DNA of 63,963 nucleotides, filler included, from Olpidium bornovanus S191 (lineage: Eukaryota; Fungi; Olpidiomycota): NCBI GenBank assembly GCA_017911155.1. It is 26 parts of 26 records of this genome, joined end to end, with 100 filler letters (N's around TTAATTAATTAA, not from the genome) between each part and the next. Parts side by side here need not be neighbours in the genome. Positions count along the whole stretch, not along the records: positions 37,144 to 38,831 come from JAEFCI010012114.1; positions 38,932 to 41,432 come from JAEFCI010006615.1; 24 more parts are not named here. One strand, 5' to 3'. Under the pieces are notes generated by a model that was not told the DNA's origin, made no database searches, and saw only the letters and a list, made by a program, of their open reading frames with translations. Position 1 is the first letter of the stretch. Every line of letters begins with the position of its first letter. Made by a program: the position numbers and the translations under genes. Of the stretch, positions 4,487 to 39,243 are shown piece by piece.

Positions 4487-5036
4487 TCAGAAGAAGGCGG
4501 CGGCCAAGACGACGAAAGCCGGGAGGGCGTACGCGGCGGCGGAATAGGCGTCTGCGGAGGCGTCGGCGGCGCCGCTGTTCCCAACGGTCGCCTTTGGGGC
4601 GTCGATGTAGTCCGGGCCGTTGGCGGCGTCGAGGGAGGCGTCGCCGGGGTAGCCGGGGTCAGGGACGACGGCGAGGACGGAGTACCGGGTGGCGTTGAGG
4701 ACGAGGGAGCCCGGCCACACTTCGACGTCGAGGGTGAGGTTCGCGACGCCGGCGGGTACGCGGGGCCAGCGGAGCTTCGCGCTGACCGCGTAGTCGCCGG
4801 GGGCGGTCAGCAGGGCGCGCAAGCGGTCGGAGATCTGGTCGACGAACAGCGTGAGGTTGCCGGCGGGGTCCGTCAGCTTCAGCGGGGGCCGCACCTGCGG
4901 CGGGTCCACGGGGAAGGAGGACGAAGGCGGGGCGGCCGCGGCGCCGCCGCCGACGACGGAGTAGTTGAACTGGAGCGGCTGGCCGACGGTCACCGTCGGG
5001 GGGAAGCTCAATGTCATGCGGGCCGCGCCGGGGTCC

Positions 5037-5067
<31 letters not shown>

Positions 5068-5125
5068 GCGCGGCGGCGAGGAGGGCGGCGGCGGCGGCGA
5101 GCGCGGCGGCAGCAGACGGGCGCAT
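4487..5125 (-). CDS. Probable secreted, GPI-anchored protein of unknown family (212 aa)
   Basis: Intronless ORF with Ala/Leu signal-like N-terminus, beta-rich core with NxS/T sites, and a small-residue segment (NSGAA) followed by a hydrophobic C-terminal tail (YALPAFVVLAAAFF). Convergent with HEM3. Confidence 0.7.
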
Positions 5126-5157
<32 letters not shown>

Positions 5158-5379
5158 TTTTTTTTTCCCGAAAGGGGGGGGGGGGAGGGGAAAAAAGGGG
5201 GGGGGGGNNNNNNNNNNNNNNNNNNNNNNNNNNNNNNNNNNNNNNNNNNNNTTAATTAATTAANNNNNNNNNNNNNNNNNNNNNNNNNNNNNNNNNNNNN
5301 NNNNNNNCATGCGAATAGTTCGGCGTTGCAAAAGGAGCCTACGGTCAAGGGGGAAAAAAAAGGCAGGGTAAAGTTAGTT

Positions 5380-7250
5380 AAAGCTTTCCTGACTTTGGCC
5401 GAATGTATCGACAAAGGCAATCGTACAGCAAAGTTGCGAGCCGGCGTCGGAGGAGGGGCCACCTCGAGATACTGAACGTTCAAAGACGCACAAATGTCGT
5501 ACCATTCCGAACTGCATTGTCAGAATAAGAACCATACTGGCAGCGCAACCGAAAAGGAACGCGGAGACAAAAAAAATGCGGAGAACCTTACCGAGTATTC
5601 GAAAAGGTTAGAATTTCCGGGCGAAATGACGCTCGCTGTTCCCGGAATGGAGACCGTGTTGTGGCAGTAATCATCACTACAGTTATCGGAAGTGGCTGCT
5701 GAACCATCATCGGCGTTGCGAGGGGTCCCGTGCTGGAGCCGAGAGCGACGACCAGAACAAGTCTGTTATTGCCATTTCCTACGGACAACGGAGACGACGC
5801 AGAAGACGAGTGGACGAGGCGGTCTTACCGCCAGGAGATAATCGCCACTCCGTTGAATAGAGTTGCTTCCGCTGCCCTGGTCAGGCACGGCAGCATCTTT
5901 GCTGCCGCCGCCCGAATCCGGCAGATCTTCGACGCTCGGATATGGCCAGCGGTGTTCCGACGGCGATGGTTCGACAGTGCGAGACTCGGTCGCCGACGGC
6001 CCGCCGTCGCGGTCAGATTCCATGTGCACAACGGTCCCGGATGCGGCTTCGTAGCAATCGCGGCCCCCCGCCTCGACCGCCGCCTGGTCATAAGCACCAT
6101 CGCCTCCCGCTGAGGGGTTTGCCTGCGAATGGACTTCCGTAACATCGCCTGGTTTCGCTAAGCACGAACCGGTCGAAGCAAAAGCCTGCTGGACACCGCC
6201 CTGTTCATTCATTTGGATTGCTCCGAGCTCTTTGCAGACCGAATCGGACAACTCTTCAATCTCTTTGCGTCTGGCGACGTCGCGTTGGCTGGGGGCCGAT
6301 TTTTTTGGTGAGTTTTTTTTTATAATTTCGTACAAGATAGGCGCCATATGTAGAAAAAGACGGTATAACGATACTGTTAAGGTTCAGCCCGCAAAGAGAA
6401 GTATACGGTAATAAAAAGGAAACGCGCTGCCAGACGCGGACTGACGCTGGACGACGCTTTCCGACGTTCCAACGCCAAAAATGACAGCAACTCCGGGAGG
6501 CTATTCTAAACGGGGAACGCCTGGAGAGGCCGGACCGGCCGACATATCGCCTTCGCCAACAATTTCTCGCAGCGAGAGAGCCGCCGCGCCTGACCGAGTT
6601 CCGGCCAGCGAAGCTGTCGACCGGGCCAGGCGGAACCAAAAAAAAACTGCGCAAACCGAACGGATCCGCCCGGACGTACCCGTCGGGGACGCAAGCAGAG
6701 AACTTGCGGTTCTCTGCCGACGGCGATGAGCCGCCGACGTTTCGTCCTTCGACAGGAGCGGCCGGGCCGACGCCGTCGCCGAAGTGCGGTATGTGGACGT
6801 CACTGGTCAACGCGGGAGGAGCGGTCGCAGCGGCAGCGGGGTCGCGCCGCGCTTCGCCGTCGAAAAAATTGCTATCGGGCTGGGCGAGTCCCTTAAGCAT
6901 TGAAGAACGCGTGAGGACGGCGGGGGAAGCGCCGGCTCTGCTGTAGCACGGGTAGGGTAAAGCGGGGCGCGCGCGGAACTCCTATAGGAGGTAACAGAGG
7001 TCCCAGAGTCAGACGACGGATGCGAGAGCTAGCGAGCCTCCGGCGGCGCCGGGAACCAGCAGGCAGAGTTGCCAGGCTGACCTTTTCCAGAGAGTCTCCG
7101 GGTTCTCTGGGACCGGGCGAAGGGCGGCGCCCGGGAAGAGCAAGAAAGGGAGGCCGCGGGTCCCTTCCTCCTGCGGCGGCAACAGCTCCGTTTTTCCCGC
7201 TGTGCCGCCTCCTGCAGGCACCGGGAACAGCGAAAACGCGCGCTCCGCAA
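5380..7250 (-). CDS. Probable multi-exon gene, product unassigned
   Basis: Several open stretches bounded by plausible AG/GT sites (AERAFSLFPVP...PENPETLWK; SRAGASP...ACVPDG; acidic low-complexity 6347-5766; NVQYLEVAPP...AVRLPLSIH). Exon chain not fully resolved; no family recognised. Confidence 0.3.
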
Positions 7251-7321
7251 CTGGCGGCGCGGAAGGGGAGTGGGGCGGGAGGTTTGCGCGCGTTCCCAGC
7301 GGTCGAGGGGGGAGGGGACTT

Positions 7322-7352
<31 letters not shown>

Positions 7353-7354
7353 CC

Positions 7355-7401
<47 letters not shown>

Positions 7402-7572
7402 GGGAAGCCCCGCAAATTCTCGCGCGCGAATCGTCTCGGCCAAACCCGGGGTGCAACCGCGCGCGGTGGCTGGCGCTGCCAGGGAAAAGAGATTTTGCGT
7501 TAGGAAGGGAGAGAAAGAAGAGGAGGTGGACAGACCGGCCGTTGCGAGCGGAAAAAAAAAAAAAAAAGAAAA

Positions 7573-8304
7573 ATGGCCCCAAGCACGAGCCGGAGTCCGG
7601 CCGCCGCCGTGCCACGCCGGGCGGCGGCGCCGGCGCCGGCGGCAGCAAAAACGGCAGCAGGCCCGCGCGCGGAGGAAGCCGCAAGCGTCCTCGCCGTCGC
7701 CTACCGGGACGTGCCAGACGGAGACGGCGGCGGGGACTTGGCGTGCTTTGACCGGCGGGTGCCGGGGATGATCGCGGCGGAACCTCCGCAGGATCCGGAG
7801 CCACCGCCGGTCGAGAGCGCGGAGTCCCCGAGGCTGCTGCCGGTGTCACGCGGAGGGCCTGCGGGGCGCGCCGGCGGCCGGAGACGGGAACTGCCGCCGC
7901 CGCCGCCGCCGCCGTCGCGGATCGTCGTTCCTTTTCCTTTTTCGCCGCCGCGCGGAGACCGCTGCGCGCCGATCGGAAGCGCCGCCGCCCCAGCCGCCGC
8001 CGCGCCCCCGGTGCGCCGATGGCCGTCCGGGCGTCCGCAGCCGCCCCAGCCGCCGACGACGCTCCTCTCGCGGCGCACGCTGTCGCCGCACCACCTGTCG
8101 CTGCACATCCCTCCACGCCCGGGCGGCGCGGCGGCTGTCGAAGTGGGCCCGTGGCCCGAGGACGGCGGCGGCGACGCGGAGCGGGGGCCCAGGCCGCAGA
8201 GGGCCGCCGCCGCCGCCGCCGCCGCGGGCCCGTTTGAGGTGGACGCCGACGCCCGCGTCTGCCGGGCCGGCATGTCGGACCTGTCGCTGTCGCTCGCCTT
8301 CTGA
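7573..8304 (+). CDS. Pro/Ala-rich hypothetical protein (243 aa)
   Basis: ATG directly after an A-rich leader, as for other genes here; single ORF; low complexity; no recognised domain. Confidence 0.35.
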   Translation: MAPSTSRSPAAAVPRRAAAPAPAAAKTAAGPRAEEAASVLAVAYRDVPDGDGGGDLACFDRRVPGMIAAEPPQDPEPPPVESAESPRLLPVSRGGPAGRAGGRRRELPPPPPPPSRIVVPFPFSPPRGDRCAPIGSAAAPAAAAPPVRRWPSGRPQPPQPPTTLLSRRTLSPHHLSLHIPPRPGGAAAVEVGPWPEDGGGDAERGPRPQRAAAAAAAAGPFEVDADARVCRAGMSDLSLSLAF

Positions 8305-8684
8305 CAAATCCCCGGGCGACACGCGTGTCTCCCGCCCGCGCCGCTGCTGCCGGGAGGGAAACGCGAGATGGGGCGCGCCGCCCGCGGGGANNNNNNNNNN
8401 NNNNNNNNNNNNNNNNNNNNNNNNNNNNNNNNNNTTAATTAATTAANNNNNNNNNNNNNNNNNNNNNNNNNNNNNNNNNNNNNNNNNNNNTGGGGGGGGG
8501 GGGGGGGGGGGGAGGGGAGGAGAAAGTGGGTGAGGGGAGGGAAATATACAGGTTTGCTTTTCTTGTCGCCGTCAACACCGGCGTTCGAGCAGCGCACGCG
8601 TTAATTATCTAAGCGCGCGGGCGGGCGCATGAATTATCTAAACGCGCGAGCGGACGAAGGGAACGCTGCCGCCCCTCCCCAATT

Positions 8685-10060
8685 CTAGTTCATGTCCATC
8701 GCGGAAACGCCCGTGATCTCTCCGCGACAGGTCGAATTGACGAGCTCGCGCCGGACCTCCGGGGAGATGGCCTCGTGGGTCTTGTGCTTGAGCAGGTCAA
8801 GAAGGGCGTCTTTCTGCTCGGGCGTCATGTCTTCCTTATACCTGCAAACAAAACGGACATCGCTCGATAATAAGAATCAAAAACGCAAGCCCAAGCCCGC
8901 CCCGTATGCCTTCCCACCCCGTCGCCACCCCCGAACGCGCCAAGGGCAACGTCTTGAATCAAAGGCGGGCGAAATTCCATCCGCGAACGAAAGAATCAAG
9001 ACAGCCACGGACCTCTGCGCAAACACCAGCAGCGACTGGTGCCACAGGACGGGCATCTGCCTGGGGTCGTTCCGAAACCTCAGGAAGTGAAACACGACCG
9101 CGTCCACCACCTTGAACGGCAGCGCGTACTTCTTGTCCAGGAGTATTCGGATAAAAAGGCTGTTCGGGCCTGCGAAAAGCAGATTGGCGCCGGAGAGGAA
9201 ACGCTGGTCAACGGATGAAAAAAAAAAATGGGAGAGGGGGGGGTTCGGCAGGAGAGAAAGCGACGCCGCGCGCCCCAACACGCACCGGTGTACTCCATCT
9301 CCGCCACCTTCAGCAGTGCTGCACTCGAGTGCAGCACGGGTATGCTGACCTTCGAGATGACGCTGCCGATGATGACGGCCTCCCGGAGGGTGCAGGTTCC
9401 GGACTGGGCAGAAAAAGGCAACCGAAACAGGTCTCAACAACACCGGCAGAGGCTGCGCCCCTTTCTTTTCACGGCCCGCGGAAAAACCCGATTCGAACCC
9501 CTCCGCCCGCAGAGTCGTCCCTTTTTTCTGTTCGTTTCTTTGTTTTTTTTTTTTCCGTTGTGTTCCCCACCTCGCAAATCGGGAAGAGTATGCCCTTAAA
9601 GAACCCCGCGGGCTTGTACAACGCCTTCTTGAGGGCCATGTACAGGTGGTAGTTGAGGTTTTTGTTCTCGGCGATGTCGCTGCGCACGCGGTCCAGAAGG
9701 ACCAGCTGGAAGAACCGCTGCGACTGCTTGGCCTTTAGGTTCGACACAAAGATTCGGGTCGCCTGGTACATTGCGTGCGGCGTCCACCGTTCGGGCGCCG
9801 TCAGGTACAGGATCTCTTCCCAGTTGCGCAGCGACGGGATGATTTTAAACGCCTTGGGCAGCTTGCCTGACGTGTACCGGCTCAGCAGCTGGCCGACCCT
9901 TGAAAGAGATCGGGCCGACGTTACCCCCGGTGGGTCTCGCGCGCGACCTTAAAGAGCGCCGCGCGTGCCTGCGACTGCGGAGAGACGTACTTGGTATACG
10001 CTTCGACAACCTTTGGATTCAACCCTTGCGGCACGCTCCGGTCATCCAGACCGAGTTGCG
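8685..10060 (-). CDS. ENP1: Bystin / Enp1 (40S biogenesis), 5'-partial, at least 5 exons
   Basis: [11 protein letters not shown]|[84 protein letters not shown]-like [15 protein letters not shown]|YKED; stop at 8685-8687. Confidence 0.96.
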
Positions 10061-11944
10061 CTGCGAAAGATCATGCACGCAAATCAGCAAACGTCTATTA
10101 TCGCAGAGTTGGCAGGGGAGCGCTGCAGCAAAAATCAAAAAAAAAGAAAGAAAAAAAAGAAAGACAGAAAAAAAAAGAAAGGGAAAAAAAAAGAAAAAAA
10201 GAAGAAAAAAAGAAGAAAAAAGGAAGAAAAAAAGAAGAAAAAAAGAAGAAAAAAAGAAGAAAAAAAGAAGAAAAAAAGAAGAAAAAAAGAAGAAAAAAAG
10301 AAGAAAAAAANNNNNNNNNNNNNNNNNNNNNNNNNNNNNNNNNNNNNNNNNNNNTTAATTAATTAANNNNNNNNNNNNNNNNNNNNNNNNNNNNNNNNNN
10401 NNNNNNNNNNCATGGGTCAGTCGACGAAAACAGAGATGTATCATAATGGTCGGTGCTTAGAAACAATTTCGTAAAGGTTTGCTGATCTATCTTTTTAGGT
10501 CAAACAGCAGATTAAGTTTACCTCACTGTTTTGCTTTTCCGTGGATATCTCGATTGTCGTTCAAACCTGCAGTTGAGAGTACTCCAAAATTCGAACGATT
10601 TCCCCAATTTTTTCGAAAGAAAATACTTTTCGCCTACAGGAACGGGATGGAAACGAAGCCGGAGGAGATGTCTGCCATTAAAGGAACTTTATTTGGGCCT
10701 GCGTGACGCCAGCTTGATGCCTCTGCGCGCGGTTGATAGGGCCGTCCGAGCGGTGTTTTGGCCGCCGCTGCCGCCGCCCTCGCATCGTTGTCCGGCAAAA
10801 TACCGACCTAAAGGCATCCGGATGGTATACTTAGCGTTTTGCATCTAATGTGATGTACAAATGTAGAGTGCGTTCTACGGTCAATCGATCAAACCCGCGC
10901 CCTCTCTTTAGAGGGCGCAGCGCGCGTAGCTCCGTCCCTATGGTAAGCACGAATCAACCAAAACGAAGGAAACATAGACTTTGCCTCGTCCCCTCCATTA
11001 TTGGCTTGGTGCGTTGCGTCCTGGCTAGGGCCTTAATTCCGTAAAATAATGCCAAAGTTTACTGCCTATACTACCTAACGCCGTGCCCTTTTCAGTGCGG
11101 TCGTTAATAGGTCCGTTTCGCTGGTGTTTGTCCATTTCACCACAGCTGCCGCTGCCTCCGATTCTGCGGGCCGTCCTCTTTTGCCGCCCTCGCTACCGCC
11201 GCGCAGTTGCTGCCTGCCGGCTCACCGTTTGCTCCCTGTCCCGCCCCGTAAGTATAGGTTCGAATCCTTTTAGTTAGAGATCAATGGTTAGCTAATAATT
11301 ATAAATAAACCATCTGCGAAAGCGCCTCTGCGCGTGTTTGTTGCCTCGGGGGCCCACGCGCCCCCCGACGTTTGCGCTTGCAAACGGATCTTGGTCGTGG
11401 CCGGAGCAGACGCTGGCGCGGCCGGGTGACGCTGGCCAATTCCAGGTAGCTTTTTTTTTTTTTTGACCTTTGCCGCATCCGGAACACGGCGCGCCAGCCA
11501 CACGGAATTGTGGCTTGGCGCGCGCCAGGGGTCACAAGCAGCAGCAGCAGCCGCAAGCACCGCCGGCAGCAGCAGCAGCAGAAGCCGGCGGGAGGCGGTC
11601 CCGCCGCCGCCGCCACAGCAAGAAGAGGGCGTTTTCTCGCTTCCTCTTCTCCTTCCTTCCGCGAGCGCGAGTGGGGCACGTGAGGGGCGGGCGGCCGGGC
11701 GGCGGCAGCGCCTCCCGCAGCCGCTCACAAGGAAACTCCTCCGCTCCCGCTCCTCCGCGTCCGGGCCACCCGGCGTGTGCGGGCCACTCGAGCGGCTCCG
11801 TCTGATCTCCGCTTCCCCACTTCGGCTATTCACTCCCTCTCCCTCCCAGCTCCCGTTTCTCGTACCTACCGCCGCTCTTCCCACGTCCCAAACGCCGGTT
11901 TCCACTCCGCCCGCCTCGAAATCTTCCGGCTTCGCCCGTAAAAG

Positions 11945-14907: not shown

Positions 14908-16038
14908 ATGGAAACCAAGCCGTCACTCCCGGCAGACGAGAAGCGTTCTCCTTCTCCTTCTTCCCCTTCTTCTTCGCCGGCCGGAATGGAAACTAAGCCG
15001 CCACTCCCGGCCGACGAAAATCGTCCTTCTTCCCCTCCTTCCCCTTCTCCGCGGGGCGGAAGGGTAACCAAGCCGTCACTCCCGGCCGACGATAAATGCT
15101 CGGGGACGCTCGCAGACCGCAGCGTGGCGGGCGGCGGCGGCGGGAGCGGCGGAGGCGAGGACGAAACTCTAGCTGGAAGCGGGGGGACACGGGAACCGGC
15201 CGAAGCGCCCGTAGGATGTGACGCCGACGGCAGCAGCCACCGCCGTTGCGAGGAGGGAGCTCCGGCCGGGAGCGACGGGGCGCCAACGGCCGAACCGTCT
15301 GCCGGGGATGACGTTGCCGCCGCGGGGCACATGCGCGGCGGGGAGTCGCCGCCGCCTCCGAGCCGCGCCGTCGGGCAACCGGCGCGATCGGCGCCGGCCG
15401 ACGGTAGGGCGGCGGCGCTTCGTCCGCCGGCGACCTGCCCTCCGGGCCGCGGCGGCCCCGGCCTCGCGGCCGCGCAGTCGGGGCCTCGCCTGCCGCAGTT
15501 GCCGGGCGATCACGTCCCGGAGACCGCCGGGTTTGCCGACGGCCGACCCGGGCCGCTGTCGTCCTGCCCGCCGCCGAACAGGAAACGTTCGCGGTCCCCG
15601 TCGCCGCCCGGGGACGATGTGCAGGCGAGACGCCCTCGCTACGCGCCGCCCGTGCCGCAGGCCGTCGAGTCAGGCCACCCCGCGAGCAACCGTGCGGTCG
15701 CAGATCACTACAACGCGCGCCCGGACCAGGGCATAGAGCGGAGGAAACAGTCTCCAATTTTCAGGCTTCGAGCTTTCAACAACTGGGTCAAGACCACACT
15801 CATTAACTACTGTACTCGCGGGCCAGGCGCCAGCGTCCTGGATATGGGCTGCGGCAAAGGAGGGGATCTGAACAAGTGGGCGCGAGCCAGATGCGGAAGC
15901 TACATCGGCGTAGGTGAGTTTGTGTCTTCAAATGGTAATGTGCGCCCGGAGACCCGCCGACGTTTTTCCAACCTCCACAAAAAAAAAGACATCGCCGAGG
16001 TGTCAGTAGGACAGGCACGGGAAAGATATCAAGGCATG
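14908..16038 (+). CDS. ABD1: mRNA cap guanine-N7 methyltransferase, 3'-partial, long low-complexity N-terminus
   Basis: VADHYNARP...[32 protein letters not shown]; intron 15914-15988; [14 protein letters not shown]. Confidence 0.93.
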
Positions 16039-16216
16039 NNNNNNNNNNNNNNNNNNNNNNNNNNNNNNNNNNNNNNNNNNNNTTAATTAATTAANNNNNN
16101 NNNNNNNNNNNNNNNNNNNNNNNNNNNNNNNNNNNNNNCGCGCGCGCGGGGGTTGCTGACACCACCCACCCCCCCTTTTTCCCTGCAATTATGGCCGGTA
16201 CGACCTACGGTTGCAG

Positions 16217-17744
16217 TTTGGTGAAATCAGATTCGTCTTGGTCGGGTTTCTTCTCATGGTCAGTGGCAGCTTCGTTGCATTTAACGCTTCGAATATTTCA
16301 TTATTGCATCCGTAATTACTATTGCATCGATGTCGGTTCTGGCGCGGCTCTGAGCGTCCGTTGCTTTGCTCAACCGTCGCTTCGCTCATTCCAAATTGCT
16401 TTCTACGTAGTTGGCGGGAATTTCGTTCGACGCCGTTCGGCTGGTTATGATCCAGAAGCTCCTGAAGAGCGAATCTTTGCAAATGGACACTCTCACGTCG
16501 CTTTACTACATCGCGCCGGTTTCAGCCGGCTGCAACATGCTGATCAGCATCATTTTTGAATCGTCCTCGGTGACCCTGGACAAGTTCCTCAATGTCGGGC
16601 TCTGGCCTTTTGTCCTCAACGGGATAGGTAAATTTATCTGACAACTGGGTGTGGCAAACCCGTATTTGCCGATGCCTGCATTTGTTTGTTGTGTGTTTTT
16701 TTTTTTTTTTTTTTTTTTTGCGGATCGGATGTTGAGCGAACGAGTCCCCGCTTATTAGTCGCCGTGTGTGACTACCTTCGGTCTCACCCGATCTTCTCCG
16801 CCGTGCGCAAAACGCAGTTTCCTTTGGCCTCAACGTAGCCGCCGTTTCCGTGGTAAAGAACACGTCCACGTTGACTCTCGGCTTGGCCGGTGTCCTGAAA
16901 GACATCCTCATCGTCGGCATGGCCATGCTGTTCTACGGCACGCCGATGACCTTGCTCCAGGCTTTTGGGTACACCATGGCGATGACGGGCTTGATGTATT
17001 ACAAAAACGGCAAGGACGTCTTCGGGTTGTGTTCTGGAGGGTGCAGATTCGCGAGGCCGTCAGTGCTCCATTACCGCCAGGTCGCCCAAATCGGCTTGCT
17101 GTTAATGGCCGTCGCCTCGTGCGTGCTGCTATACCGCGTCAAGGACGAGGTCCAATACGTCGATCAGACCGCGGCGTGCGCGGACAGGGTCGTGCAACTG
17201 ACAGTCGTCCAGTCGGCGCACATCGGCCTGCCAGCCCCAGAAGGCTTCCCTACCTCCGACAAGGTGGCCGTGATCGTCGAGACGAGGGCCCTGCCGACGC
17301 TGGTCCCCCTGATAATGCATTTTGCTGGCGTTCTGGCTTGGGACTGGCACTGTTGGTTTTTGTCCGATGACCGGTCCCTCGTCGTCTACCAGCGTCTTTT
17401 CATCCGTTTCGGCCGAAAGCGTCGCGTGGTAATGCGGAAAGTCTATCTTGGGGGATGGGTCCTCGCCTGGTAACGCCTCGCCCGCTTCGCCTTTTTTTTT
17501 CCGCCTCCAGTTCACATATTTTACAGTGACGCAAACAGCCACATGTTACTTAGCTCGAACCCGATCCAGCGGATGATCGAGTCGGGAAAGCTGAACATGA
17601 CGCTAATACCGCCGCTGATAGAGATGGGCAACGGCGAGCTCACCAGCCGGTTCATGACGGATCCATGGTTGTGGTCCCAGATCCAGCAGGAGAACGTACG
17701 TGTGTGCAGTTGTCGCGCGGAGAAAACGGGCGCAGCGAGCCGGC

Positions 17745-37143: not shown

Positions 37144-37490
37144 CGGCCAAGTATTCGCACGCGCCGAACCTCGAGGCGAAAACCTTCATGCAGCCGGAGC
37201 AGGCCTATTACGCGCATCATCCGGGCCGCTTCTTCTACGTGAAGGACGAAGAGACGGGCGAGATCTTCTCGGCCCCGCACGAACCCGTGCGCGCGGCGCC
37301 CGACCGCTTCAGCTTTTCCGTCGGCCGCGACGACCTCGCCTGGACCGTCGAAAAGCTGGGCATCCGCATCGACCTGCGCCTGGGCGTCCCGGTCGACGAC
37401 GTCGCCGAGCTGTGGACCCTCACCGTGACGAACGTCAGCGGCCGGCCGCGCAAGGTCAGCGTCTATCCCTACTTCACGATCGGCTACATG
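37144..37490 (+). CDS. Bacterial GH94/GT36-associated (NdvB / cellobiose-phosphorylase-like) N-terminal fragment
   Basis: AKYSHAPNLEAKTFMQPEQAYYAHHPGRFFYVKD...FSAPHEPV...ELWTLTVTN.SGRPR..SVYPYF; bacterial high-GC codon usage; homology stops abruptly at CATG (37487-37490). Confidence 0.75.
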
Positions 37491-37780
37491 GATTCAGGTC
37501 TGCAGAGCACAACCAAATGGTGACCGCACAGTCGGGCTAACAGTGGCTTTGTGATATGGCGGCGAACTACGTTTATCTTCAATCCACGTCAACTGATGCC
37601 GCTTCCTTAGGCACCGCAGGACGTGCCGTTGATGTGTAAAACCGAATGGCCGCTTATGGCCGATCTCGGCCGTTCGGGTAAGCATAGCAGTTTGCCAGGT
37701 TGGAAAATCCACAAACTGTCACGACCGGCCGCTACCGACCCAAACCGGACATTGAAAGGCGCAGCAGATGGCCGGATGAG

Positions 37781-38077
37781 CTATTCGTATAGCTTCCCCA
37801 TGTGAAGAATTTGTGCAGCGCGTTTCCACGCGTTACTCGGCTTTTCGTAGAATCGGAGCCCGCCTATCGACTCATCGCCCCATCTAACAGCTGCGTTCAG
37901 ATACGCGCCAATCGTACCGTTCTCCCATCCATTTGCACCAGGGCCATAAGGGGAACTTGGGTTCGCCAACTCTTTTTGCTGCTCGTCTTCCCAGTCTTCT
38001 GCAAGAGCCTGCACAAATCGGAGAAAGGACTGCTCATCATTCACTGCGTCAAGGATTCCTTCTAATTGTGAAGTCAT
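37781..38077 (-). CDS. Bacterial small acidic hypothetical protein (98 aa)
   Basis: Intronless; VNDEQSFLRFVQALAEDW...GWENGTIGAYL.AA..W...NAWKRAAQILHMGKLYE resembles small immunity-protein-like hypotheticals. Confidence 0.8.
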   Translation of the reverse strand: MTSQLEGILDAVNDEQSFLRFVQALAEDWEDEQQKELANPSSPYGPGANGWENGTIGAYLNAAVRWGDESIGGLRFYEKPSNAWKRAAQILHMGKLYE

Positions 38078-38247
38078 AATGTCGGTTATTTACAGAGGTT
38101 ATTTGGGTGGCGAGGTGACGTTCTTGAACGCTGCTTCTGGCCGATCCCGGCCGTTGGGGACCGCACAACATCGTGCCCCGCTGAAAACTCCACGCACAGG
38201 CACGACAGGCAGCATCCAATCTGGTTGAGACCTCGCGTGGCACACTG

Positions 38248-38535
38248 TTACCGGACCGCCTTGCCAAACACGCGACCATGCCAGTACGTCTGCGGTGCCG
38301 CGAACCAGCCTTCGTTTCTGGGCGTACGGAACTGAGCAAGTTGAGACATCGGTATTCGATAGCGACTGAACAGAGCTAACAGGTCCCTAAGGGACGCCTG
38401 CGACGGGTTCGCTTTGACCACCGATGTATCGTGTTCCCAGCGAAGGACTCCGGGAATCTCCATGGCCCATTCAAACAAATGCTTCTCGTCCAGCCGAGAG
38501 CCAAACCGCACGCCCGAACAGTCGAGATAAATCGT
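38248..38535 (-). CDS. Bacterial small hypothetical protein (~95 aa), probable ACG start
   Basis: GAGGA RBS, then ACG ATT TAT CTC GAC TGT TCG GGC GTG (xIYLDCSGVRFGSRLDEKHLFEWA...LRDLLALFSRYRIPMSQLAQF...YWHGRVFG). Confidence 0.75.
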   Translation of the reverse strand, partial: TIYLDCSGVRFGSRLDEKHLFEWAMEIPGVLRWEHDTSVVKANPSQASLRDLLALFSRYRIPMSQLAQFRTPRNEGWFAAPQTYWHGRVFGKAVR

Positions 38536-39243
38536 TGGTGTCCTCGTTCTTTTGAGTCCGCTTCAGGCCGATATCCGACGGTATGAATAGCGCAGTGTAC
38601 GCGGCTGTTACTCTCGGAGCAACTTCAGGGTGTTGCTACGGATAATGAAAACGAGAACGTCGCGCATCAACCGCGAACACAGTCCCCAAAAAAAACAGGA
38701 CCGGAAGCGATAAGCGACCAGTCCCTAAGAGGAGATATTTGAAGAGTGCGCAGCCCCCCGCGCACCCGCACCGCCTGCCGGCGCCACCGGCTGGTAGCGC
38801 TAACAAGCAATGCTGACAGTGTAACGTTTCCNNNNNNNNNNNNNNNNNNNNNNNNNNNNNNNNNNNNNNNNNNNNTTAATTAATTAANNNNNNNNNNNNN
38901 NNNNNNNNNNNNNNNNNNNNNNNNNNNNNNNTGGAATTCATTGAGGAGCTCATGGTGATTACTAGCCGGAGGACGCTGGGGTTTACCCAACCCGCCGTTT
39001 TTTCTTCTCTTTTTCGCTTTTTCTGTTTTTCTGTTTTTTTTTTTTTTTTTTTTGTTTTTTTTTTTTTTTTTTTGGTTTTCTTTTTGTGTCCCCTTGTTTT
39101 TACGATCTCAGACTTCTCACGAGTGGGCCCGCTTTTTATTTTATTTTAATTTCTCTTTTTTTTTTGTCGAAATGGCCGCTTCATATTTTTTTTTTTTCAT
39201 TTTTGTTCGATTTGCTGTCGTTGTTGCCTTTCGCTATAAGTAG

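Follow-up and report, generated by a model that had tools for sequence, protein, structure and literature searches.

An array of gene-plus-repeat cassettes in a Massilia-type contig, probably part of an integron-like gene-capture system distinct from integrons

The array and its genes

The window analyzed here is a stretch of 63,963 nucleotides joined from 26 records of the Olpidium bornovanus S191 assembly (GCA_017911155.1), and one of its pieces, JAEFCI010012114.1 (1,688 nt, positions 37144-38831), carries a short array of genes separated by a repeated sequence, which we interpret as probably a cassette array, devoid of its recombinase, of an integron-like gene-capture system distinct from integrons. 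This piece is part of a Massilia-type (Oxalobacteraceae) chromosome, in which a LacI-family regulator gene and a GH94 gene flank the array, and it is made up of two parts, a GH94 flank and a low-GC stretch on the minus strand, with a GC content of 63-70% in the former (37144 to approximately 37490) that falls to approximately 54% beyond it. The array consists of the following features:

37648-37750, minus strand: repeat A, a full hairpin site, with right arm at 37648-37676, a centre and left arm at 37716-37750 (nhmmer 103 bits, E 1e-30)
37781-38077, minus strand: DUF7660 cassette gene, 98 aa (PF24693, E 2e-7)
38129-38231, minus strand: repeat B, a full site, with right arm at 38129-38157 and a degenerate left arm at 38197-38231 (nhmmer 59 bits, E 4e-17)
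38248-38535, minus strand: cassette gene of 95 codons, no Pfam match (95% DNA identity to its relative in locus L143)
38556-38608, minus strand: half-site C, the head of the array, with right arm at 38556-38581 and a centre-like stretch, no left arm (78% core match)

A sequence-only reading of the piece had proposed that short same-strand genes are each separated by a palindromic repeat of about 30 bp, a description that is partly confirmed, in that the repeats are real while their size and the first of the proposed open reading frames (ORFs) had to be revised. The motif does recur in one orientation at approximately 37648, 38129 and 38556, and its 22-nt core has two exact matches in the piece versus none in 100 shuffles. 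However, what had been taken for a palindrome of about 30 bp is the right arm of an imperfect hairpin of approximately 103-109 nt, and the inverted fourth copy (37716-37750), although present as a sequence, is the left arm of repeat A rather than a separate partner in a doublet. Similarly, the notion of one repeat per spacer holds for the two ORFs at 38077-37781 and 38535-38248, each of which lies just upstream of a copy, but C is only a half-site.

With regard to the genes themselves, the ORF at 38077-37781 is real, as it encodes a DUF7660 protein of which exact copies are present on 14 contigs. For the ORF at 38535-38248 the reading frame is present, yet its first codon (38533-38535) is ACG in the window and ATG in L143, and the first usable start is a GTG at 38511 (giving 87 aa); compared with L143, six non-synonymous and three synonymous codon changes were counted, and this gene may be decaying in the present lineage. 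The partial hydrophobic ORF that had been proposed to end at 38608 did not stand, being interrupted by stops at short intervals, left uncalled in identical contigs and situated in a conserved leader; a search of 38609-38831 found no intact frame. In relatives, the cassette that follows repeat A carries a 487-aa Tle1-like gene (L122 2789-4252; PF09994), and no repeat was detected 3' of this gene in L122. Its product, of the Tle1-like (DUF2235) phospholipase type associated with type VI secretion systems (T6SS), sits among otherwise immunity-like genes.

A repeat family with a near-invariant right arm

Repeats A and B are 73% identical over 84 nt and both fit a family of approximately 109 nt, for which an alignment of 23 copies (A2) was read on the gene-sense strand. 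The layout comprises a looser left arm, GTCCGCTTnGGGTCGG..., a conserved centre and a nearly invariant right arm with the consensus CGAACGGCCGAGATCGGCCAnAAGCGGAC, and this near-invariant arm of 29 nt is kept across genera. The left end of the repeat is GTCCGCTT, with GAAY ahead of it in no more than about half of the copies; the right arm terminates in ATCGGCCAnAAGCGG(A/T)C, and a logo of 121 distinct right ends shows the conserved end AAGCGG(A/T)C. Across the family this imperfect inverted repeat ranges from 60 to 125 nt, including compact forms of 60-66 nt without the centre and the long form of 109 nt in which the centre is conserved. A minimal site of 24 nt, in which the left-arm stem is fused straight to the end of the right arm, was observed at L137 (approximately 1040-1065; also in L175), where it comes after a cassette that is 5'-truncated relative to L097.

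Several positions of the left arm depart in a conserved manner from the complement of the right arm, which suggests that the site has a built-in polarity. Repeat A is predicted to fold into a long imperfect hairpin (-23.9 kcal/mol, z -2.2) with symmetric 1x1 and 2x2 internal loops and without extrahelical bases on one side, the gene-sense strand being predicted at -23.9 versus -22.0 kcal/mol for the other strand. Over the alignment the two arms pair in 70% of cells, versus 22-41% with the partner shifted along; RNAalifold failed to reproduce the long hairpin. A promoter in the conserved centre was also considered and rejected, as the sigma-54 spacing is off by one (by eye) and a scan gave no sigma-70 site.

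Gene content at one locus in three strains

Positions 37487-38831 of the piece are 100% identical to several Logan metagenome contigs (L122 and others), and this allele could be compared with those of L143 and Massilia sp. PDC64. In L122 the order is the LacI-family gene (340-1368), the leader, half-site C, the 95-codon gene, repeat B, the DUF7660 gene, repeat A, the 487-aa Tle1-like gene, small ORFs and the end of the GH94 gene. L143 has the 95-codon gene and repeat B in common with L122 at 95% identity; it then carries a 179-aa gene and an Imm32 gene, both accompanied by a repeat of their own, and returns to the L122 sequence thereafter. In PDC64 the array is placed between the LacI-family regulator gene and a convergent, intact 783-aa GH94 gene, and its cassettes encode products of 171, 111, 107 (SUKH), 224 and 126 aa. 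Thus, gene content at this locus differs between strains and breaks at the repeat end, as would be expected from the gene-capture system parallel to integrons that the sequence-only reading had put forward; an invariant gene order, which would have spoken against it, was not seen, the order differing precisely at the sites.

The leader and C are 82% identical between PDC64 and L122, with homology ending exactly at 38556, the 3' end of the C arm, and L122 and L143 part at the 3' end of repeat B. Breaks within 1-4 nt of the right-arm end were found for L122/L143 (both junctions, from alignments), L136/L167, L104/L175 and L121/L122, whereas two pairs break at the left arm instead, L104/L181 at its edge and L097/L137 approximately 14 nt inside it. 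The right-arm junctions are compatible with an exchange near AAGC^GGAC. A test of own-arm versus previous-arm pairing, intended to place the crossover, scored 6.4 versus 6.0, with 6.3 at random, and carried no signal.

Distribution, clustering and cargo of related arrays

A pattern scan of species-representative genomes returned at least 120 loci, which were then sorted by blastn and nhmmer; the first pattern was too loose, and most of these loci were discarded as chance matches in Streptomyces. Among the matches listed, full-length relatives are confined to two genera, Massilia and Pseudoduganella, and to one isolate with the label Herbaspirillum, and Duganella has the right arm only. An exhaustive scan of Joint Genome Institute (JGI) metagenomes with a stricter 23-nt core found 59 stretches; this core pattern picks up approximately 40% of copies, and the argument from copy number is based on it and on metagenome contigs. 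In each of four such contigs (0.8, 0.9, 1.7 and 1.9 Mb) the core is confined to a single stretch with at most five arms, so the genome-wide scattering that would have argued against a cassette array was not seen. Likewise, a 20.7-kb stretch of the PDC64 genome has its four full copies and the half-site packed into 2.4 kb, and no copy was found among the neighboring core genes.

Within every locus the well-scoring full-length copies are on one strand (for example in L100, L050, L130, L131 and L178), and each repeat closely follows the 3' end of a low-GC accessory gene of the same orientation. Of 60 intervals between repeats (median interval 857 bp), 52 have their longest ORF on the array strand, and arrays have a GC content of 52-56% versus 63-68% in their flanks. 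The cargo is diverse, each family being seen once in the census. It includes immunity-type genes (SUKH/SMI1-KNR4, SUFU, Imm32, Imm35 and DUF7660) and effector-type genes (the Tle1-like T6SS phospholipase and a BURPS668_1122-type toxin deaminase), together with ankyrin, CAP12/Pycsar TIR, AAA_21 and SAD/SRA-HNH proteins, VIT1, ADP-ribosylglycohydrolase, methyltransferases and esterases. The suspicion of an immunity- or defence-like cargo is supported by the SUKH, Imm32, Imm35, SUFU, DUF7660, TIR and HNH genes.

An element of the insertion sequence family IS110 (NF033542, 354 bits) was observed inside the arrays of two Massilia genomes (L100 2710-4100 and L060 7263-8000), its two copies being 73-82% identical in DNA and opposite in orientation relative to the repeats. 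The IS110 transposase was considered as the recombinase of the arrays and rejected, as it belongs to an element inserted in two loci and does not adjoin the sites. An ORF upstream of the L050 array (232-972) gave no family match.

A small tyrosine recombinase associated with the sites

The sequence-only reading had placed the recombinase elsewhere than on this contig, and a tyrosine recombinase family does co-occur with the site. The L100 array holds a small gene whose 208-aa product has PF00589 as its sole match and scores far under every Xer and IntI cut-off (22 bits versus 265 for TIGR02249). Residues 22-195 of this protein align to residues 105-281 of XerD, indicating that it comprises the catalytic domain with neither a core-binding domain nor the IntI insertion. 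The same gene was found by tblastn in L097, L050 and two metagenome loci. An exact-protein look-up of the L100 recombinase returned no match, and more than 8,000 relatives are present in databases, many of them above 80% identity and all annotated only as "tyrosine-type recombinase/integrase". The family is also encountered on large plasmids of Pseudomonas, Achromobacter, Ralstonia and Paraburkholderia.

Thirteen recombinase copies in 12 independent loci, picked for long contigs, were examined for adjoining sites. An inverted arm lies approximately 105-145 nt upstream of the recombinase start in L136/167, L195/196 and L189, and weaker matches of left-arm type lie approximately 50-85 nt upstream in L193 and L194. 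On the other side, a co-oriented right-arm core motif begins 39-95 nt past the stop in L136/167, L195/196, L193, L097 and L191a, and CGGCCAnnAG occurs within 160 nt past the stop in 6 of the 13 copies, including one on a Pseudomonas aeruginosa megaplasmid, versus 0.03 expected per locus. The layouts around the recombinase resemble those of integrons or of rAID clusters: in M. arenae (L193) the order is recombinase, site, transporter gene and full repeat; in M. brevitalea (L097) a site and then two cassettes with compact repeats come after a recombinase that has decayed; and in M. norwichensis (L189) a divergent array begins at the upstream site. The recombinase is divergent from the adjacent site or array in L136, L189 and L195.

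The association extends to diverged members of the family. On a plasmid of Paraburkholderia megapolitana (L198, NZ_CP041744.1) a recombinase of 208 aa, 73% identical, is accompanied at 4924-11629 by seven co-oriented copies of a diverged 47-nt repeat (CGGCCAGGAnnAG ... ATCGTCGACAATC), the first of which is 32 nt past the recombinase stop; most copies are 3' of a small co-oriented gene, and the repeats alternate with VapBC, GIY-YIG, GNAT and other small genes. Related sites are found 3' of recombinase homologues in Noviherbaspirillum and on Paraburkholderia and Pseudomonas plasmids, and enzyme and site travel together and appear to have diverged in parallel.

A number of further observations were made at these loci. 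In L198 a recombinase fragment heads a second run, which opens with VapBC. The clinical P. aeruginosa megaplasmid pPA942-IMP45 (L197, NZ_CP129201.1) carries a family member at 6986-7700 by a ptx/phn phosphite cluster, with a GC-rich hairpin and a CGGCCAAGAGC motif 39 nt past its stop. Noviherbaspirillum pedocola (L191) possesses two recombinase copies, 10001-10627 and 15821-16447, which are 5.8 kb apart and followed by a methyltransferase and a RelA/SpoT-domain protein, respectively. Finally, an H-NS-family gene is directly beside the recombinase in two unrelated loci (L192 665-994 and L194 8748-9077), and such a neighbor may silence the low-GC array.

Flanks of the array in the window

The remainder of the piece consists of the following features:

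37144-37490, plus strand: 5' fragment of a GH94 gene (cellobiose-phosphorylase-type; core chromosomal flank; Pfam PF06165, E 1e-17)
37487-37490, no strand assigned: CATG microhomology junction between the GH94 interior and the cassette leader (identity to L122 stops at 37487, GH94 homology at 37490)
37491-37647, minus strand: 5' leader of the next cassette, cut 22 nt before the gene start (100% identical to L122 2609-2766)
38609-38831, minus strand: non-coding leader between the off-piece LacI-family regulator gene and the array (80-82% identity to the PDC64 leader)

The GH94 fragment encodes the N-terminal part of the protein and is 94% identical to the intact gene of PDC64. The left junction joins the leader 3' of repeat A to codon ~117 of GH94, at a position that is 22 nt ahead of the Tle1-like start codon and where there is no repeat, and eight other contigs of the same strain type lack the CATG join and run on into the Tle1-like gene. 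This junction is a deletion variant or an assembly chimera and is outside the cassette mechanism. An Rfam scan of the piece gave no match.

A model for cassette exchange and the evidence for and against it

In the reading that we consider probable, a cassette would consist of one short low-GC accessory gene and the imperfect inverted repeat at its 3' end, and the array would begin at half-site C, which offers the right arm alone. The catalyst would be the 208-aa Xer-like tyrosine recombinase, encoded elsewhere in such genomes and itself bracketed by sites. Conservative site-specific recombination between two co-oriented sites would excise a circle of gene plus site, and this circle could be taken up again by a half-site (C, for example) or by the site that follows the recombinase gene. 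In this manner cassettes would be gained, lost and swapped, with the junction in the last bases of the right arm, at approximately AAGC^GGAC. The array in the window would depend on a recombinase acting in trans, as in a CALIN, an attC cluster that has no integrase of its own. We infer that the 208-aa recombinase cuts the repeat sites and that cassettes pass through circular intermediates; the form of the substrate, either folded single-stranded or duplex DNA, and the expression of the cassettes belong to the same inferred part of the model.

A number of findings weigh against this model. Most arrays have no recombinase in cis, it being present in 5 of approximately 75 loci; the piece has none, nor does one lie less than 10 kb away from the syntenic array of PDC64. 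Two recombinase loci (L192 and L199) have their downstream site in inverted orientation, the cases described being L192 and a Methylomonas plasmid, and in L189 and L194 no site was found within 160 nt downstream of the recombinase. No cassette common to two wholly different arrays was found, the only sequence shared between arrays being the IS110 element and that of near-identical strains. Covariation between the arms is absent, with 69.8% of positions paired versus 69.6% in shuffles for a hand-drawn structure; the arms, being paired at the shuffled level, therefore owe their conservation to sequence rather than to compensatory change, which lends no support to a folded substrate, and the proposal that structure is under selection, based on the pairing seen in the hand-drawn structure, was dropped. 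In addition, the crossover point is only bracketed, and homologous recombination between repeats would also give breaks at the repeat edge, so that junction data alone are no proof of site-specific chemistry.

It could be argued that the hairpins are selfish, non-autonomous derivatives of an element composed of inverted repeat, recombinase and inverted repeat, resembling repetitive extragenic palindromes (REPs) in their doublet form (REPINs) or miniature inverted-repeat transposable elements (MITEs), which pile up 3' of genes in accessory islands whose content changes by other means, the genes not being mobilized. We regard this as unlikely, although it accounts for some of the data. The recombinase gene is situated between inverted arms just as the gene for a REP-associated tyrosine transposase (RAYT) is situated between REPs, the hairpins are doublets of one short imperfect palindromic arm located in extragenic positions after genes, their size classes of 109, approximately 65 and 24 nt suggest internal deletion, and the lack of covariation is in line with it. 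On the other hand, RAYT is a transposase of the HUH (Y1) type and REPINs are scattered, with copy numbers of tens to hundreds. The enzyme found here, in contrast, belongs to the tyrosine recombinases of PF00589 (PF01797 was not searched for genome-wide), and the copies are few, clustered, polar and bound variable genes, in agreement with the sequence-only reading that these repeats are not REPs. Similarly, inverted arms are shared with MITEs, but the well-scoring full-length copies of an array all point the same way, as does the upstream gene in 52 of 60 intervals, and no direct target-site duplications are visible at the repeat ends in the 23-copy alignment. Moreover, it is entire units of gene plus repeat, with breaks at the arm end, that distinguish the alleles, and tyrosine recombinases perform conservative site-specific exchange and not replicative spread.

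Alternatively, the repeats might be passive 3' elements, such as stabilizers, terminators or protein-binding sites, with variation generated by RecA-dependent recombination following horizontal transfer. The coincidence of breakpoints with the edge of a conserved sequence is also what homologous exchange gives, and the slightly better folding of the gene-sense strand, together with conserved T.G and G.T wobbles that favor this strand, likewise speaks for it. This explanation nevertheless appears improbable. Intrinsic terminators were rejected, as no terminator-like site that was found coincides with a repeat and no stem with a T-run was detected at A, B or C; it is the sequence that is conserved and not the structure, with a near-invariant 29-nt arm across genera; and the explanation leaves unaccounted for both the association with a recombinase family, including diverged sites next to diverged recombinases, and the acquisition of repeats by unrelated genes.

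It is very improbable that the sites are ordinary attC sites in a CALIN served by an IntI elsewhere in the genome: for all that they are 60-125-nt imperfect palindromes 3' of short, promoterless-looking genes, of variable centre length and with a simple, attI-like half-site at the head, only 15 of 121 sites show GTT after the arm, there is no conserved AAC...GTT pair, no IntI is present in any locus, and the recombinase is not an IntI by score or by alignment.

Comparison with known cassette and defence gene systems

In integrons, attC sites carry the cores RYYYAAC and GTTRRRY around a palindrome of 57-141 bp that closes the cassette on its 3' side (PMC3053210), and IntI binds their folded bottom strand, in which two extrahelical bases protrude on one side (PMC3053210; 10.1101/030866). 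CALINs are common (10.1101/030866), and IntI is recognized by a specific insertion in its catalytic domain and by a gene next to attI (PMC8138268). The arrays described here resemble integrons in having one gene per cassette with an imperfect palindrome at its 3' end (A and B, at 103 nt, fall within the attC size range and occupy the attC position), a single orientation, a half-site as head, a diverse low-GC cargo, arrays devoid of a recombinase, an IS110-family element inside arrays and, in some loci (L136, L189 and L195), a recombinase divergent from the adjacent site or array. They differ from integrons in that the RYYYAAC/GTTRRRY cores are absent, with GTT at +1 to +3 in only those 15 right ends, which agrees with the sequence-only reading that the repeats do not match attC. 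Other differences are the predicted fold of copy A without one-sided extrahelical bases, the conserved centre of the long form, and a recombinase reduced to a catalytic domain of 208 aa without the IntI insertion, for which the XerD alignment leaves no room, its gene being bracketed by sites and often co-directional with the array.

Among described systems, the one that comes nearest is rAID-1, the recombinase-associated acquired interbacterial defence clusters of Bacteroidales, which are arrays of orphan immunity-type genes with skewed GC and a repetitive intergenic sequence "reminiscent of integrons", headed by a conserved XerD-family recombinase that is reported only in Bacteroidales (Ross et al., 10.1101/471110). 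Both systems exhibit a low-GC array of immunity-type genes with a repeated intergenic sequence, and in L097, L193 and L198 a tyrosine recombinase is likewise followed by a motif just 3' of its stop and then by a co-directional array. In contrast, the arrays reported here are from a different phylum, their enzyme is a 208-aa protein of Beta- and Gammaproteobacteria, and the cargo additionally includes effectors, anti-phage genes and transporters; the comparison with rAID-1 is drawn from the published description of the clusters.

Conclusions and perspectives

In a broader sense, the 208-aa recombinase family could represent a widespread, IntI-independent platform of Beta- and Gammaproteobacteria, on chromosomes as well as large plasmids, which captures, excises and reshuffles cassettes of one gene each and whose hairpin-type sites co-diverge with the enzyme, a proposition for which we judge the chances to be even. 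The literature searched did not describe any such system for Massilia, Oxalobacteraceae or other Proteobacteria, which is not proof of novelty, and a literature search for two recombinase accessions found nothing.

As devices dedicated to gene capture, integrons are the textbook case. If this broader proposition is true, these arrays would constitute a second, independently evolved "integron", and cassette platforms would have arisen more than once; the rAID-1 clusters had already hinted that similar arrays may be run by other recombinases. Current integron finders would miss such arrays because of their reliance on IntI and attC models. A very small recombinase acting with a defined arm of approximately 30 nt would be a possible tool, and, as the recombinase family is also found on large plasmids, the system may carry accessory genes well beyond soil commensals. 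In their hosts, these arrays would serve as stores of genes for interbacterial immunity, effectors and anti-phage defence, and they would explain how soil bacteria such as Massilia come to accumulate orphan immunity and defence genes.

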